Shown in pieces: positions 1 through 8,338 of a DNA stretch of 8,338 nucleotides. Origin of the DNA: Octopus sinensis (taxonomy: Eukaryota); assembly GCF_006345805.1 (NCBI RefSeq), contig NW_021828452.1, positions 1 to 8,338 on the forward strand, read 5' to 3'. The position numbers and the translations under genes were made by a program. The first letter of the stretch is position 1, and the number at the start of each line of letters is the position of its first letter. The notes under the pieces are model-generated. The model ran no database searches, had not been told where the DNA came from, and saw nothing but the letters and a program-made list of their open reading frames with translations.

Positions 1-301
1 TACTTAAATTTTCCTCGAATGAGGCTTTTACATGCCGAAGTCTACTTGGTGTAATGATAATTTTTCCAAATTAATTAATTTCACCCTTCATTATTACGGA
101 TAACCATATTTTATCTCAGTAGATGACCACAGCATCTTGTTTTGGCTACACGCGGGTGGGAAGGGGCTGTTGACACAATCGTTTCATTCACAAATTGAAT
201 TCGGTGATACCAGTTGCGGATTCTAGCTCGCTCTGACACTGAGTTGAGTTGTGCCTTCTGGTATCTCAAAATTCAATATATAATCATTTATGATATAGTA
301 T

Positions 302-411
302 TCTACGCTGAAGAGAAAAGAAGTTTCGGTAAGATAGAATTATTTATTTATATTTAATATTTAATTCCTATGCTTTCCTAAAAACTTGATTTCGAAACGT
401 ACGTCCGTAGA
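302..411 (+). ncRNA. Type I hammerhead ribozyme, copy 1 (core intact; predicted cleavage after 405)
   Basis: Helix I TCTACG 302-307 pairs with CGTAGA 406-411. CTGAAGA at 308-314. Helix II 315-393 is closed by GAAA/TTTC. GAAAC 394-398, GTAC 399-402, GTC 403-405. Confidence 0.9.
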
Positions 412-898
412 TAACTAAAAAAACGTATGATAGATTGCAGTTAATTCATTCTCTTACCTGTTTGTGTCTGCCTTCCAAATGCTGTTTTTACTGAGATCTC
501 CCTTTTTAGTAGAAGAAATAGCTATAACCCTTTGACTACTATTTCTAAATTCGGTATGTGGTAGGCAACTCGTTGCTAAACCCTTATTGCTAAGTATTAC
601 TTAAATTTTCCTCGAATGAGGCTTTTACATGCCGAAGACTACTTGTTGTAATTGATAATTTTTCCAAATTAATTAATTTCACCCTCTTATTACGGATAAC
701 CATATTTTATCTCAGTAGATGACCACAGCATCTTGTTTTGGCTACACGCGGGGGGGAAGGGCTGTTGACACAATCGTTTCATTCACAAATTGAATTCGGT
801 GATACCAGTTGCGGATTCTATCTCGCTCTGACACTGAGTTGAGTTGGTGCCTTCTGGTATCTCAAAATTCCATATATAATCATTTATGATTATAGTAT

Positions 899-1004
899 TC
901 TACGCTGAAGAGAAAAGAGTTTCGGTAAGATAGAATTATTTAATATTTAATATTTAATTCCTATGCTTTCCTAAAAACTTGATTTCGAAACGTACGTCCG
1001 TAGA
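899..1004 (+). ncRNA. Type I hammerhead ribozyme, copy 2 (core intact; cleavage after 998)
   Basis: TCTACG 899-904, CTGAAGA 905-911, GAAAC 987-991, GTC 996-998, CGTAGA 999-1004. Confidence 0.9.
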
Positions 1005-1495
1005 TAACTAAAAAAACGTATGATAGATTGCAGTTAATTCATTCTCTCTTACCTGTTTGTGTCTGCCTTCCAAATGCTGTTTTTACTGAGATCTCCCTTT
1101 TTAGTAGAAGAAATAGCTATAACCCTTTGACTGCTATTTCTAAATTCGGTATGTGGTAAGGCAACTCGTTGCTAAACCCTTATTGCTAAGTATTACTTAA
1201 ATTTTCCTCGAATGAGGCTTTTACATGCCGAAGACTACTTGGTGTAATTGATAATTTTTCCAAATTAATTAATTTCACCCTTCATTATTACGGATAACCA
1301 TATTTTATCTCAGTAGATGACCCAGCATCTTGTTTTGGCTACACGCGGGTGGAAGGGGCTGTTGACACAATCGTTTGTTTCATTCACAAATTGAATTCGG
1401 TGATACCATTGCGGATTCTAGCTCGCTCTGACACTGAGTTGAGTTGGTGCCTTCTGGTATCTCAAAATTCATATATAATCATTATGATTATAGTA

Positions 1496-1604
1496 TCTAC
1501 TACTCTGAAGAGAAAAGAAGTTTCGGTAAGATAGAATTATTTAATATTTATATTTAATTCCTATGCTTTCCTAAAAACTTGATTTCGAAACGTACGTCCG
1601 TAGA
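1496..1604 (+). ncRNA. Type I hammerhead ribozyme, copy 3 (helix I 5' strand altered)
   Basis: CTGAAGA 1505-1511 and GAAACGTACGTC^CGTAGA (cleavage after 1598) are present. The 5' strand reads TCTACTACT instead of TCTACG, which breaks the core-adjacent pair. Confidence 0.6.
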
Positions 1605-2104
1605 ACTAAAAAAACGTAATGATAGATTGCATTAATTCATTCTCTCTCTTACCTTTTGTGTCTGCCTTCCAAATGCTGTTTTTACTGAGATCTCCTTTTT
1701 AGTATAAGAAATAGCTATAACCCAAAACCCTTTGAGACTGCTATTTCTAAATTCGGTATTGGTAAGGCAACTCGTTGCTAAACCCTTATTGCTAAGTATT
1801 ACTTAAATTTTCTTCCCGAATGAGGCTTTTACATGCCGAAGACTACTTGGTGTAATTGATATTTTTTTTCCAAATTATTAATTTCACCCTTCATTATTAC
1901 GGATAACCATATTTTATCTCAGTAGATGACCACAGCATCTTGTTTTGGCTACACGCGGTGGGAAGGGGCTGTTGACACAATGTTTCATTCACAAATTGAA
2001 TTCGGTGATACCAGTTGCGGATTCTAGCTCGCTCTGACACTGAGTTGAGTTGGTGCCTTCTGGTATCTCAAAATTCAATATATAATCATTTATGATTATA
2101 GTAT

Positions 2105-2213
2105 TCTAACGCTGAAGAGAACAGAAGTTTCGGTAAGATAGAATTATTTAATATTTAATATTTAATTCCTATGCTTTTCCTAAAAACTTGATTTCGAAAC
2201 GTACGTCCGTAGA
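2105..2213 (+). ncRNA. Type I hammerhead ribozyme, copy 4 (1-nt insertion in helix I; cleavage after 2207)
   Basis: TCTAACG-CTGAAGA (core 2112-2118). Helix II begins GAAC instead of GAAA. GAAAC 2196-2200, GTC 2205-2207, CGTAGA 2208-2213. Confidence 0.75.
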
Positions 2214-2710
2214 TAACTAAAAAAACGTATGATATATTGCAGTTAATTCATTCTCTCTTACCTGTGTTTCTGCCTGCCTTTCCAAATGCTGTTTTTACTG
2301 AGATCTCCCTTTTTAGTAGAAGAAATAGCTATAACCCTTTGACTGCTATTTCTAAATTCGGTATGTGGTAAGGCAACTCGTTGCTAAACCCTTATTGCTA
2401 AGTATTACTTAAATTTTCTTCGAATGAGGCTTTTACATGCCGAAGACTACTTGGTGTAATTGATAATTTTTCCAATTTTAATTCAAACCCTTCATTATTA
2501 CGGATAACCATATTTTAATCTCAGTAGATGACCACGCAAGCAGCTTGTTTTGGCTACACGCGGGTGGGAAGGGGCTGTTGACACAATCGTTTCATTCACA
2601 ATTGAATTCGGTGATACCAGTTGCGGATTCTAGCTCGCTCTGACACTGAGTTGAGTTGGTGCCTTCTGGTATCTCAAAATTCATATATAATCATTTATGA
2701 TTATAGTATT

Positions 2711-2817
2711 TCTTACGCTGAAGAGAAAAGAAGTTTCGGTAAGATAGAATTATTTAATATTTAATATTTAATTCCTATGCTTTCCTAAAAACTTGATTTC
2801 GAAACGTACGGCGTAGA
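2711..2817 (+). ncRNA. Type I hammerhead ribozyme, copy 5 (cleavage triplet lost)
   Basis: CTGAAGA 2718-2724 is present. The 3' side reads GAAACGTACG-G-CGTAGA (2801-2817), with no GTC triplet. Confidence 0.55.
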
Positions 2818-3305
2818 ATAACTAAAAAACGTATGATAGATTGCAGTTAATTCTTTCTCTCTACCTTTTGGTCTGCCTTCCAAATGCTGTTTTTTAACTG
2901 AGATCTTCCTTTTTAGTAGAAGAAATAGCTATAACCCTTTGACTGCTATTCTAAATTCGGTATGTGGTAAGGCAACTCGTTGCTAAACCCTTATTGCTAT
3001 AATTACTTAAATTTTCCTCGAATGAGGCTTTTACATGCCGAAGACTACTTGGTGTATTGATAATTTTTCCAAATTAATTAATTTCACCCTTCATTATTAC
3101 GGATAACCATATTTTATTTCAGTAGATGACCACAGCATCTTGTTTTGGCTACACGCGGGTGGGAAGGGGCTGTTGACACAATCGTTTCATTCACAAATTG
3201 AATTCGGTGATACCAGTTGCGGATTCTAGCTCGCTCTGACACTGAGTTGAGTTGGTGCCTTCTGTATCTCAAAATTCAATATATAATCATTTATGATTAT
3301 AGTAT

Positions 3306-3410
3306 TCTACGCTGAAGAGAAAAGAAGTTTCGGTAAGATAGAATTATTTAATTTTAATATTTAATTCTATGCTTTCCCCAAAACTTGATTTCGAAACGTA
3401 CGTCCGTAAT
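3306..3410 (+). ncRNA. Type I hammerhead ribozyme, copy 6 (core intact, helix I shortened; cleavage after 3404)
   Basis: TCTACG 3306-3311, CTGAAGA 3312-3318, then GAAACGTACGTC. The 3' strand reads CGTAAT rather than CGTAGA. Confidence 0.75.
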
Positions 3411-3904
3411 AACTAACTAAAAAAACGTATGATAGATTGCAGTTAATTCATTCTCTCTTACCTGTTTGTGTCTGCCTTCCAAATGCTGTTTTTACTGAGA
3501 TCTCCCTTTTTAGTAGAAGAAATAGCTATAACCCTTTGACTACTATTTCTAAATTCGGTATGTGGTAAGGCAACTCGTTGCTAACCCTTATTGCTAAGTA
3601 TTACTTAAATTTTCCTCGAATGAGGCTTTTACATGCCGAAGACTACTTGGTGTAATTGATAATTTTTCCAAATTAATTAATTTCACCCTTCATTATTACG
3701 GATAACCATATTTTATCTCAGTAGATGACCACAGCATCTTGTTTTGGCTACACGCGGGTGGGAAGGGGCTGTTGACACAATCGTTTCATTCACAAATTGA
3801 ATTGGTGATACCATTTGCGGATTCTAGCTCGCTCTGACACTGAGTTGAGTTGGTGCCTTCTGGTATCTCAAAATTCAATATATAATCATTTATGATTATA
3901 GTAT

Positions 3905-4010
3905 TCTACGCTGAAGAGAAAAGAGTTTCGGTAAGATAGAATTATTTAATATTTAATATTTAATTCCTATGCTTTCCTAAAAACTTGATTTCGAAACGTA
4001 CGTCCGTAGA
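3905..4010 (+). ncRNA. Type I hammerhead ribozyme, copy 7 (core intact; cleavage after 4004)
   Basis: TCTACG 3905-3910, CTGAAGA 3911-3917, GAAACGTACGTC^CGTAGA ending at 4010. Confidence 0.9.
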
Positions 4011-4498
4011 TAACTAAAAAAACGTATGATAGATTGCAGTTAATTCATTCTCTCTTCCTGTTTGTGTCTGCCTTCCAAATGCTGTTTTTACTGAGATCTC
4101 CCTTTTTAGTAGAAGAAATAGCTATAACCCTTGACTGCTATTTCTAAATTCGGTATGTGGTAAGGCAACTCGTGCTAAACCCTTATTGCTAAGTATTAAC
4201 TTAAATTTTCCTCGAATGAGGCTTTTACATGCCGAAGACTACTTGGTGTAATTGATAATTTTTCCAAATTAATTAATTCAACCTTCATTATTACGATACC
4301 ATATTTTATCTCAGTAGATGACCACAGCATCTTGTTTTGGCTACACGCGGGTGGGAAGGGGCTGTTGACACAATCGTTTCATTCACAAATTGAATTCGGT
4401 GATACCAGTTGCGGATTCTAGCTCGCTCTGACACTGAGTTGAGTTGGTGCCTTCTGGTATCTCAAAATTCAATATATAATCATTTATGATTATAGTAT

Positions 4499-4604
4499 TC
4501 TACGCTGAAGAGAAAAGAAGTTTCGGTAAGATAGAATTATTTAATATTTAATATTTAATTCCTATGCTTCCTAAAAACTTGATTTCGAAACGTACGTCCG
4601 TAGA
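4499..4604 (+). ncRNA. Type I hammerhead ribozyme, copy 8 (core intact; cleavage after 4598)
   Basis: TCTACG 4499-4504, CTGAAGA 4505-4511, GAAACGTACGTC^CGTAGA ending at 4604. Confidence 0.9.
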
Positions 4605-5090
4605 TAACTAAAAAACGTATGATAGATTGCAGTTAATTCATTCCTCTTACCTGTTTTTTGTGTCTGCCTTCCAAATGCTGTTTTTACTGAGATCTCACTT
4701 TTTAGTAGAAGAAATAGCTATAACCTTGACTGCTATTTCTAATTCGGTATGTGGTAAGGCAACTCGTTGCTAAACCCTTATTGCTAAGTATTACTTAAAT
4801 TTTCCTCGAATGAGGCTTTTACATGCCGAATACTACTTGGTGTAATTGATAATTTTTTTTCCAATTAATTAATTTCACCTTCATTATTACGGATAACCAT
4901 ATTTTATCTCAGAGAATGACCACAGCATCTTGTTTTGGCTACACGCGGGTGGGAAGGGGCTGTTGACACAATCGTTCATTCACAAATTGATTCGGTGTGA
5001 TACAGTTGCGATTCTAGCTCGCTCTGACACTGAGTTGAGTTGGTGCCTTCTGTTCTCAAAATTCAATATATAATCATTTATGTATAGTAT

Positions 5091-5194
5091 TCTACGCTGA
5101 AGAGAAGAAGTTTCGGTAAGATAGAATTATTTAATATTTAATATTTATTCCTATGCTTTCCTAAAAACTTGATTTCGAAACTTACGTCCGTAGA
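5091..5194 (+). ncRNA. Type I hammerhead ribozyme, copy 9 (helix III loop TTAC; cleavage after 5188)
   Basis: TCTACG 5091-5096, CTGAAGA 5097-5103, GAAAC-TTAC-GTC^CGTAGA. The helix III palindrome is broken by G>T at 5182. Confidence 0.8.
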
Positions 5195-5684
5195 TACCCT
5201 AAAAAACGTATGATAGATTGCAGTTAATTCATTCTCTCTTACCTGTTTGTGTCTGCCTTCCAAATGCTGTTTTTACTGAGATCTCCCTTTTTAGTAAAGA
5301 AATAGCTATAACCTTTGACTGCTATTTCTAAATTCTGTAATGTGGTAAGGCAACTCGTTGCTAAACCCTTATTGCTAAGTATTACTTAAATTTTCCTCGA
5401 ATGAGGCTTTTACATGCCGAAGCCTACTTGTGTAATGATAATTTTTCCAAATTAATTAATTTCACCCTTCATTATTACGGATAACCATATTTTATCTCAG
5501 TAGATGACCACAGCATCTTGTTTTTGGCTACACGCGGGTGGGAAGGGGCTGTGGACACAATCGTTTCATTCACAAATTGAATTCGTGATACAGTTGCGGA
5601 TTCTAGCTCGCTCTGACACTGAGTTGAGTTGGTGCCTTCTGGTCTCTCAAAATTCAATATATAATCATTATGATTATAGTATTC

Positions 5685-5788
5685 TCTACGCTGAGAGAAA
5701 AGAAGTTTCGGTAAGATAGAATTATTTAATATTTAATATTTATTCCTATGCTTTCCTAAAACTTGATTTCGAAACGTACGTCCGTAGA
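5685..5788 (+). ncRNA. Type I hammerhead ribozyme, copy 10 (1-nt deletion in core)
   Basis: TCTACG 5685-5690 is followed by CTGAGA, one A short of CTGAAGA. The 3' half GAAACGTACGTC^CGTAGA (5771-5788) is intact. Confidence 0.6.
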
Positions 5789-6278
5789 TACTAAAAAACG
5801 TATGATAGATTGCAGTTAATTCATTCTCTCTTACCTGTTTGTGTCTGCCTTCCAAATGCTGTTTTTACTGAGATCTCCCTTTTTAGTAGAAGAAATAGCT
5901 ATAACCCTTTGACTACTATTTCTAAATTCGGTATGTGGTAAGGCAACTCGTTGCTAAACCCTTATTGCTAAGTATTACTTAAATTTTCCTCGAATGAGGC
6001 TTTTACATGCCGAAGACTACTTGGTGTAATTGATAATTTTTCCAAATTAATTAATTTCACCCTTCATTATTACGGATAACCATATTTTATCTCAGTAGAT
6101 GACCACAGCATCTTGTTTTGGCTACACGCGGGTGGGAAGGGGCTGTTGACACAATCGTTTCATTCACAAATTGAATTCGGTGATACCAGTTGCGGATTCT
6201 AGCTCGCTCTGACACTGAGTTGAGTTGGTGCCTTCTGGTATCTCAAAATTCATATATAATCATTTATGATTATAGTAT

Positions 6279-6384
6279 TCTACGCTGAAGAGAAAAGAAG
6301 TTTCGTAAGATAGAATTATTTAATATTTAATATTTAATTCCTATGCTTTCCTAAAAACTTGATTTCGAAACGTACGTCCGTAGA
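6279..6384 (+). ncRNA. Type I hammerhead ribozyme, copy 11 (core intact; cleavage after 6378)
   Basis: TCTACG 6279-6284, CTGAAGA 6285-6291, GAAACGTACGTC^CGTAGA ending at 6384. Confidence 0.9.
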
Positions 6385-6876
6385 TAACTAAAAAAACGTA
6401 TGATAGATTGCAGTTAATTCATTCTCTCTTACCTGTTTGTGTCTGCCTTCCAAATGCTGTTTTTACTGAGATCTCCCTTTTTAGTAGAAGAAATAGCTAT
6501 AACCCTTTGACTGCTATTTCTAAATTCGGTATGTGGTAAGGCAACTCGTTGCTAAACCCTTATTGCTAAGTATTACTTAAATTTTCCTCGAATGAGGCTT
6601 TTACATGCCGAAGACTACTTGGTGTAATTGATAATTTTTCCAAATTAATTAATTTCACCCTTCATTATTACGGATAACCATATTTTATCTCAGTAGATGA
6701 CCTCAGCATCTTGTTTTGGCTACACGCGGGTGGGAAGGGGCTGTTGACACAATCGTTTTCATCACAAATTGAATTCGGTGATACCAGTTGCGGATTCTAG
6801 CTCGCTCTGACACTGAGTTGAGTTGGTGCCTTCTGGTATCTCAAAATTCAATATATATCATTTATGATTATAGTAT

Positions 6877-6980
6877 TCTACGCTGAAGAGAAAAGATTTC
6901 GGTAAGATAGAATATTTAATATTTAATATTTAATTCCTATGCTTTCCTAAAAACTTGATTTCGAAACGTACGTCCGTAGA
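6877..6980 (+). ncRNA. Type I hammerhead ribozyme, copy 12 (core intact; cleavage after 6974)
   Basis: TCTACG 6877-6882, CTGAAGA 6883-6889, GAAACGTACGTC^CGTAGA ending at 6980. Confidence 0.9.
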
Positions 6981-7469
6981 TAACTAAAAAAACGTATGAT
7001 AGATTGCAGTTAATTCATTCTTTCTTACCGTTTTTGTCTGCCTTCCAAATGCTGTTTTTACTGAGATCTCCCTTTTTAGTAGAAGAAATAGCTATAACCC
7101 TTTGACTGCTATTTCTAAATTCGGTATGTGGTAAGGCAACTCGTTGCTAAACCCTTATTGCTAAGTATTACTAAATTTCCTCGAATGAGGCTTTTACATG
7201 CCGAAGACTACTTGGTGTAATTGATAATTTTTCCAAATTAATTAATTTCACCTTCATTATTACGGATAACCATATTTTATCTCAGTAGATGACCACAGCA
7301 TCTTGTTTTGGCTACACGCGGGTGGGAAGGGGCTGTTGACACAATCGTTTCATTCACAAATTGAATTCGGTGATACCAGTTGCGGATTCTAGCTCGCTCT
7401 GACACTGAGTTGAGTTGGTGCCTTCTGGTATCTCAAAATTCAATATATAATCATTTATGATTATAGTAT

Positions 7470-7576
7470 TCTACGCTGAAGAGAAAAGAAGTTTCGGTAA
7501 GATAGAATTATTTAATATTTAATATTTAATTCCTATGCTTTCCTAAAAACTTGATTTCGAAACGTACGTCCGTAGA
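7470..7576 (+). ncRNA. Type I hammerhead ribozyme, copy 13 (matches consensus; cleavage after 7570)
   Basis: TCTACG 7470-7475, CTGAAGA 7476-7482, helix II 7483-7558 (76 nt), GAAAC 7559-7563, GTAC 7564-7567, GTC 7568-7570, CGTAGA 7571-7576. Confidence 0.92.
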
Positions 7577-7761
7577 TAACTAAAAAAACGTATGATAGAT
7601 TGCAGTTAATTCATTCTCTCTTACCTGTTTGTGTCTGCCTTCCAAATGCTGTTTTTACTGAGATCTCCCTTTTTAGTAGAAGAAATAGCTATAACCCTTT
7701 GACTGCTATTTCTAAATTCGGTATGTGGTAAGGCAACTCGTTGCTAAACCTTATTGCTAAG

Positions 7762-7795
<34 letters not shown>

Positions 7796-8015
7796 TAAAT
7801 ATATGTATGTATGTGTGTGTGTATGTATGTATATATGTATGTATGTATGTATGTATGTGTGTATGTATGTATGCATGTATGTATGCATGTATGTATGTAT
7901 ATATGTATGTATGTATATATATATGAACCTATGTATGTATGTATCTATGTATGTATGCATATAGGTATGCATGTATGTATGTATGAATGTGATTGTGTGT
8001 GTATGTGTGTGAATG
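7762..8015. repeat. Compound microsatellite (TA)n / (TATG)n / (TG)n
   Basis: A (TA)n tract from 7762 grades into degenerate TATG/TGTG/CATG tetramers up to about 8015. Confidence 0.95.
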
Positions 8016-8111
8016 TAAGTATTAGGGTTTGTACTGTTTCTGTATAAAAAATAGAAAAAAAAGATTTGTTTACGAAGAAAAAATGTTTGTATGGAAATGG
8101 GCGAACTGATT

Positions 8112-8127
8112 GTGGTGGTGGTGGTGG
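8112..8127. repeat. (GTG)5 microsatellite
   Basis: GTGGTGGTGGTGGTGG read directly from the sequence. Confidence 0.85.

Positions 8128-8145: not shown

Positions 8146-8211
<66 letters not shown>
8146..8211. repeat. (GA)n microsatellite, slightly interrupted
   Basis: About 66 nt of AG/GA dinucleotides with two short interruptions. Confidence 0.95.
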
Positions 8212-8338
8212 AAGAAATACTGTAGCAATGAATGGGTGAAGCGTGAGAGATATTATTCATTGTGTTGTTATTTGAGACAGGTAGTCTCTGTCTACTCGCT
8301 AACACACACGCTACAATATACACACATATACCTTTAAT

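Follow-up and report, generated by a model that had tools for sequence, protein, structure and literature searches.

Positions 1 to 7763 of an 8,338-nt stretch of Octopus sinensis DNA (contig NW_021828452.1; this whole stretch is referred to below as the window) form a tandem, head-to-tail array on the forward (+) strand. The array comprises 13.0 units with a 600-nt consensus of 35% GC, and the elements of a type I hammerhead ribozyme (HHR) are found once per unit, on the + strand. Judged from its sequence, the array is probably a genuine retrozyme-type hammerhead repeat, that is, a retrozyme without long terminal repeats (a non-LTR retrozyme), equivalent to a hammerhead-bearing satellite. By analogy with known systems it may also be transcribed and processed today, a point on which we are evenly divided. 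All of the sequence hallmarks of non-LTR retrozymes are present: tandem units, one type I HHR in each on the same strand, no LTR or coding capacity, a GC content below 50% and a highly self-paired predicted monomer. Together with the complete ribozyme core, the AT-rich composition and the short palindromic helix III, these hallmarks bear out the testable part of a preliminary description of this DNA, which had read the array as retrozyme-like.

Direct-repeat families spaced 590-609 nt run from position 1 to ~7763, in agreement with the ~600-bp tandem repeat that the preliminary description had placed at 1-7764. The 600-nt consensus was obtained by aligning units cut at the predicted cleavage sites. 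The pieces between the predicted cuts measure 593, 600, 609, 605, 592, 600, 594, 590, 594, 596, 596 and 596 nt, and beside these 12 full units there are partial units of 405 and 194 nt at the array ends. The GC content is flat at ~35% along the array and shifts only at the microsatellite flank. The array is absent from the output of Tandem Repeats Finder because the longest period in that search was 500. The unit was also correctly described as non-coding: the longest stop-to-stop frame in the consensus has 51 codons, and the longest open reading frame (ORF) in any copy (1-7763) has 71 amino acids. There are no LTRs, the units being uniform and without terminal repeats (neither the primer-binding site, PBS, nor the polypurine tract, PPT, was searched for specifically), and no tRNA-like or SINE-like segment was found in the unit. 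A plant LTR retrozyme, with type III hammerheads in two LTRs, a PBS and a PPT, is ruled out by the type I topology and by the uniform units without LTRs.

The units differ from the consensus by ~3% on average (103 substitution, 81 deletion and 46 insertion cells over 12 units), and most differences are private to single units. About 55% of the differences are indels of 1-3 nt, clustered in units u3, u5 and u8. Part of this indel-rich variation may be residual long-read error, which it resembles, and some of the ribozyme copies that appear damaged may therefore be intact in the real genome.

Helix I of the ribozyme is open, with the 5′ and 3′ ends of the motif lying in it, and consists of UCUACG/CGUAGA (6 bp), followed by a 2x2 internal loop and four more pairs. 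The core box CUGAAGA (C3-A9) and the GAAA are found in the consensus and in 12 of the 13 copies, copy 10 being without one A. Helix II is an imperfect hairpin of 73-79 nt across the copies, closed by the G10.1-C11.1 pair. Helix III has 2 bp (A15.1-U16.1 and C15.2-G16.2) and a GUAC loop, and helix and loop together, ACGUACGU, make a perfect 8-nt palindrome. The A15.1-U16.1 pair followed by C17 (non-G) at the cleavage site is found in 12 of 13 copies, the remaining one, copy 5, having GGC. The invariant core is thus complete (C3-A9, G12-A14, A15.1-U16.1 and C17), and the G10.1-C11.1 pair is present too. The cleavage triplet is GUC, with the cut predicted 3′ of it, between …ACGUC and CGUAGA…. The GAAAC strings of the 13 copies start at 394, 987, 1587, 2196, 2801, 3393, 3993, 4587, 5177, 5771, 6367, 6963 and 7559. 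Inspection of the consensus and of each copy confirmed the order and the coordinates of the hammerhead elements given in the preliminary description, as well as all 12 of its predicted cut positions, which are listed with the individual copies below.

Seven of the 13 copies are intact, all on the + strand like the others. Copy 1 (302-411) has a 6-bp helix I, CUGAAGA at 308, a helix II of 79 nt, GAAA at 394 and a predicted cut after 405. Copies 2 (899-1004), 7 (3905-4010), 8 (4499-4604), 11 (6279-6384) and 12 (6877-6980) have predicted cuts after 998, 4004, 4598, 6378 and 6974, respectively. In copy 13 (7470-7576), helix I pairs 7470-7475 with 7571-7576, CUGAAGA occupies 7476-7482 and GAAA 7559-7562, helix III with its loop (ACGUACGU) spans 7562-7569, and the predicted cut follows C17 at 7570. 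The extended helix II of this copy (7483-7558, 76 nt) begins with 4 bp (GAAA/UUUC), continues through a 2x2 AG/GA internal loop into ~20 further pairs and is AU-rich and imperfect; its hairpin has a predicted energy of −13.5 kcal/mol (z = −2.4). Copy 9 (5091-5194; predicted cut after 5188) differs in loop 3 only, where a G-to-U change (ACUUACGU) breaks the palindrome while core and helices are intact.

The remaining five copies carry heavier changes. Copies 4 and 6 keep the core and have a weakened helix I: copy 4 (2105-2213; predicted cut after 2207) has an extra A (UCUAACG), and copy 6 (3306-3410; predicted cut after 3404) has lost a G from the 3′ strand (CGUAAU), leaving 4 contiguous bp. 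In copy 3 (1499-1604; nominal cut after 1598) the 5′ strand of helix I reads …CUACU instead of UCUACG, so that the G2.1-C1.1 pair and the helix I register are lost. Copy 10 (5685-5788; nominal cut after 5782) is broken by the deletion of one A from the box (CUGAGAG), its 3′ half being intact. Copy 5 (2711-2818) is broken at the cleavage site, where GGC for GUC removes U16.1 and C17; no cut is expected there, and units 4 and 5 would remain a single ~1197-nt piece. The preliminary description had listed copies 3, 5 and 10 as damaged, which stands, and had passed over the defects in copies 4, 6 and 9.

In a 136-nt search, the Rfam model Hammerhead_1 (RF00163) aligned over its full length (1-45 of 45) to 7470-7576 of the + strand, scoring 20.4 bits at E = 0.0073 and skipping 72 nt inside helix II. 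A descriptor of the type I motif was also applied to 20,000 dinucleotide-preserving shuffles of the circularized unit, both strands being searched. In a relaxed form (helix I of at least 4 bp, helix II of at least 3 bp, helix III of at least 2 bp and a helix II span of 8-120 nt) it matched 14 of the 20,000 shuffles, and at the grade of the observed motif (6, 4 and 2 bp) it matched none. Both searches, the model and the descriptor tolerant of a long helix II, had been suggested in the preliminary description. A CUGANGA box occurs once in the consensus, on the + strand; the − strand has none, nor did it give a descriptor match, and hence the unit has no − strand ribozyme. Rfam alignment, minimum free energy (MFE) folds and descriptor search agree on three helices around the core.

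Folding predictions for the unit are consistent with a structured RNA on the ribozyme strand. The linear + strand monomer (600 nt) has a predicted energy of −163.9 kcal/mol (z = −6.4), and the circular + strand one of −158.4 kcal/mol with 65% of its nucleotides paired (z = −6.25; 0 of 150 shuffles as stable). The − strand of the unit reaches −129.8 kcal/mol (z = −3.07), which leaves the + strand ~29 kcal/mol better, and this asymmetry points to RNA-level structure on the ribozyme strand. Such an asymmetry is expected if G-U pairs support the structure of the ribozyme strand. Helices I and II of the HHR appear in the MFE folds of both the 123-nt region and the whole monomer. When two copies of the ribozyme region are folded together, a domain-swapped dimer is predicted, with an intermolecular helix III of 8 bp and an energy of −57.2 kcal/mol, versus 2 x −22.4 kcal/mol for the separate copies; the predicted dimer corresponds to the double-hammerhead arrangement.

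Two stretches located 36-86 nt downstream of the cut each show 78-86% complementarity to one strand of helix II (7010-7030 to 7495-7515, and 7043-7060 to 7544-7561). By pairing with helix II, these stretches could inactivate the ribozyme in monomers or circles. The predicted MFE fold keeps the ribozyme helices despite these alternative partners for helix II. An inverted repeat of 20 nt (7360-7379 with 7425-7444, 85% complementary) lies just upstream of the ribozyme and could form a long local hairpin (window 7356-7449).

The route by which such an array would be expressed and propagated is proposed, in all its steps, by analogy. Read-through transcription of the + strand would produce multimeric RNA, Pol II or an outside promoter being the likely source; read-through of several units by Pol III would be unlikely, because the + strand has seven runs of four or more T per unit, which should stop this polymerase. 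Each ribozyme would then cut 3′ of GUC, giving monomers of ~590-610 nt with 5′-OH and 2′,3′-cyclic phosphate ends. Efficient cutting would probably occur through two neighboring ribozymes paired via ACGUACGU as a double hammerhead, an arrangement that is probably needed because helix III has only 2 bp and a palindromic GUAC loop. With cutting in this mode, multimers would be cut and monomers or circles spared. The monomers would fold into compact, branched structures and would probably be circularized by a tRNA ligase of the RtcB type, and reverse transcription in trans, for which Penelope-like elements (PLEs) are the likeliest agents, would supply new DNA copies.

Newt satellite 2 was described in 1987 and was followed by Sm-alpha and pDo500, and retrozymes were named in 2016-2020, with copy numbers of up to ~120,000 per genome. 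Like the array, Sm-alpha of Schistosoma combines a type I hammerhead with an abundant non-coding repeat in an invertebrate genome. Its unit of ~335 nt is SINE-like and its compact ribozyme is active as a monomer, whereas the array described here is tandem and yielded no tRNA-like part.

The closest comparison is with metazoan non-LTR retrozymes (Cervera & de la Pena 2020, PMC7229834; Li, Clavereau & Pollet 2026 preprint), which likewise have one type I HHR per tandem unit on one strand, no LTR, a non-coding sequence with GC below 50%, a highly self-paired predicted monomer RNA and a 2-bp helix III with a tetraloop, the last being typical of invertebrate retrozymes (PMC7229834). Retrozyme-type repeats occur in thousands to more than 100,000 copies per genome in many animals and derive from the pseudo-LTRs (pLTRs) of PLEs (bioRxiv 10.64898/2026.07.22.740005). 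Published retrozyme units in vertebrate, insect and coral families measure 51-972 bp, with a mean of 650 bp in ray-finned fish (bioRxiv 10.64898/2026.07.22.740005), and the 600-nt unit falls within this range; it is longer than the units of invertebrate retrozyme families, which measure 150-450 bp. The canonical metazoan type I HHR has a helix I of 6 bp, a helix II of 4 bp and a helix III of 1-2 bp with a small palindromic loop (PMC4209133). The main departure from this design is helix II, which has 4 bp and a loop 2 in metazoan non-LTR retrozymes and is a hairpin of 73-79 nt here, with a score that misses the Rfam gathering cut-off.

A short helix III is too weak in a single motif, and in tandem repeats it is the dimer that is active (PMC4209133); dimer action and a short palindromic helix III are common to the ribozymes of newt satellite 2, PLEs and retrozymes (PMC4209133, PMC7229834). 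Newt and salamander satellite 2 (HHR_Amex1/2) resembles the array in its satellite-type organization, its type I HHR, in which helix III is very short and the loop palindromic, and a predicted dependence on the double hammerhead. Its units measure ~330-350 bp, however, the unit described here being nearly twice as long and its helix II extended. The amphibian satellite 2 motifs keep conserved nucleotides for the loop 1-loop 2 contact, and sequence similarity between them and the array is not established. The pDo500 repeat of Dolichopoda cave crickets (463-505 bp; PMC2837043) also has a long unit of ~500 bp with one hammerhead, for which single and double hammerhead modes have been proposed, and its multimeric transcripts are processed to monomers (PMC2837043). 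Compared by description only, pDo500 has a compact hammerhead of 49 nt (68 nt when extended), whereas the motif here reaches 107 nt through helix II. The minimal hammerheads of PLE pLTRs (PMC4209133) share with it the type I topology, a small palindromic helix III, the dimer logic, a longer-than-canonical helix II and an association with (TA)n targets. Those motifs have a helix I of 4-5 bp and a helix II of 6-8 bp, in contrast to a helix II hairpin of ~25 bp here, and they flank a 3-4-kb body encoding reverse transcriptase (RT) and GIY-YIG, an ORF of which kind the array is without.

Several observations weigh against the array being a retrozyme-type repeat that works as proposed. No promoter was identified, and there is no PLE in the window. 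The Rfam score of 20.4 bits does not reach the RF00163 gathering score of 34 bits, presumably because the insert in helix II is penalized, and in the 641-nt search and across the whole window (at gathering and at E ≤ 10) the hammerhead was not reported, being lost to the filters. Helix III has merely 2 bp. Since helix II is extended to 73-79 nt and the canonical loop 2 is gone, the canonical loop 1-loop 2 contact, which speeds natural hammerheads at physiological Mg2+, is absent or replaced here. Three of the 13 copies (3, 5 and 10) are broken, and two (4 and 6) have a weakened helix I. The HHR region is as variable as the remaining unit (0.40 versus 0.35 variant cells per column), a comparison that is uninformative on conservation. 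Finally, no homologue was found in the collections searched, and there is therefore no covariation support for any helix; the copies within the array depart from the consensus by a few percent, mostly through private differences of the indel type.

The array could instead be a dead or silent satellite, in which a genuine relic HHR from a retrozyme or PLE ancestor resides in a heterochromatic array that unequal crossing-over amplifies and that is neither transcribed nor processed. A ribozyme segment conserved no better than the remainder of the unit, the defects in five of 13 copies and the lack of an identified promoter are all compatible with this explanation, as are copies lying a few percent off the consensus, which DNA-level homogenization predicts. 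We nevertheless consider it unlikely: seven copies are perfect and an eighth has the loop 3 change only, the + strand fold is far more stable than that of the − strand or of shuffles, single-base indels, typical of long-read error, account for many of the defects, and the retrozyme arrays that have been examined experimentally are all transcribed (PMC7229834).

The right end of the array directly abuts a (TA)n/(GTAT)n microsatellite (7761-8016), which is not part of the repeat and is a possible insertion target. The last repeat bases (GTAT) overlap the microsatellite motif, a microhomology. Counted from the predicted cleavage site, window position 1 corresponds to unit position 196 and the array end (7755-7763) to unit position 195, a match in phase with a chance of ~1 in 600. 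The match could be a coincidence, an effect of where the record was cut, or a sign that the two junctions share one unit position, as on integration of a circle or rolling-circle multimer; the last holds provided that the left junction truly lies at window position 1. A preference of PLEs for (TA)n targets has been reported (PMC8557442), and the (TA)n junction is circumstantial evidence that fits mobilization by a PLE. On a bolder interpretation, which we regard as rather improbable, the array would be the direct footprint of an animal retrozyme integration, in which a PLE-type (TA)n target had received either a multimer or a circle that had been opened at a single site, and the ~75-nt helix II would mark a subclass of HHRs that screens at Rfam thresholds miss, such that censuses undercount them.

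The same junction is relevant to a further alternative, in which the array is an amplified pLTR segment of an autonomous PLE and not an independent non-autonomous element. Type I HHRs with a short palindromic helix III and partial tandems are known from pLTRs (PMC4209133, PMC8557442), retrozymes are nested among pLTRs in phylogeny (bioRxiv 10.64898/2026.07.22.740005), and the array adjoins a (TA)n tract. However, the 7.7-kb repeat contains no RT/GIY-YIG frame and no ORF longer than 71 amino acids, and it consists of 13 uniform units in place of one or two pLTRs around a 3-4-kb body, which makes this origin very unlikely.

It is more improbable still that the array represents an exogenous or infectious circular RNA replicon of the viroid-like type in the form of a DNA copy, either integrated or present as a rolling-circle multimer. 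The 600-nt size, the compact fold and the ribozyme do resemble those of viroid-like RNAs, and the unit count is a whole number, with the array starting and ending at the same unit position. Yet the ribozyme is found in one polarity only, whereas the Avsunviroidae type has both; it is of type I with a dimer-type helix III, as in metazoan genomic repeats, and not of type III as in most viroid-like RNAs; the flank consists of eukaryote-style microsatellites; and no match was found in viral contigs. That a plain satellite merely contains hammerhead-like strings by chance, as the Rfam score below gathering, the missing full-window match and helices without covariation data would allow, is barely credible given that shuffling never reproduced a motif of the observed grade and a much laxer one only rarely (14 of 20,000), that the 6 bp, 4 bp and 2 bp plus palindromic loop follow the published canonical metazoan design point by point (PMC4209133), and that helix II, a single hairpin in its fold, has G10.1-C11.1 as its exact closing pair.

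Relatives of the repeat were sought in several collections. An exact 21-mer from the 3′ half of the ribozyme had no match in metagenome contigs or in prokaryotic genome contigs, and a gapped pattern of the core had none in viral contigs. In metagenomes the gapped pattern gave three matches (L001 2835-2936, L002 3263-3351 and L003 12193-12285), which represent one conserved unrelated locus; their helix I strands are not complementary, and they were rejected as chance matches. A protein search with the 52-amino-acid consensus ORF, aimed at spurious gene calls on related repeats, yielded no candidate, exact-protein look-ups with two window ORFs returned no record, and one unit, submitted to blastn together with the flank, had no match in phage and plasmid collections. 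Ribozyme strings (GAAACGUACGUC, CUGAAGAG and others) retrieved nothing relevant from full texts and supplements. The repeat looks like an undescribed family of a well-known kind, as seen against metagenome, viral, prokaryotic, phage and plasmid collections and not against Dfam, Repbase or eukaryotic genomes.

The 575-nt right flank contains no recognizable gene. Its density of simple repeats is unusually high and hints at an animal genome rich in microsatellites: beyond the (TA)n/(GTAT)n tract lie a (GGT)4-5 run (8113-8126) and a 70-nt (AG)n tract (8146-8215). Rfam matches to mir-297, mir-3149, mir-1277, mir-466 and similar families (7763-7985) score at most 54 bits against gathering scores of 80-101 and are artefacts of GTAT/TA low complexity, not miRNA genes; apart from them, the Rfam search of the whole window gave only weak noise.

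The kind of repeat found here is well known and its long helix II is its one unusual trait; the array opens no new mechanism and settles no open question. Its 20.4 bits against a cut-off of 34, together with the loss to filters in searches longer than ~150 nt, mean that standard annotation would call it a plain satellite, as the preliminary description had anticipated. This is a practical blind spot, for the motif falls below the Rfam cut-off and filters and standard screens miss it. The unusually long helix II puts two questions to the test: what degree of peripheral structure is tolerated by the type I motif, and whether a substitute can take over from the loop 1-loop 2 contact. If confirmed, the array would add a long-unit (600-nt) family to the animal ribozyme-bearing repeats that produce abundant small circular RNAs.

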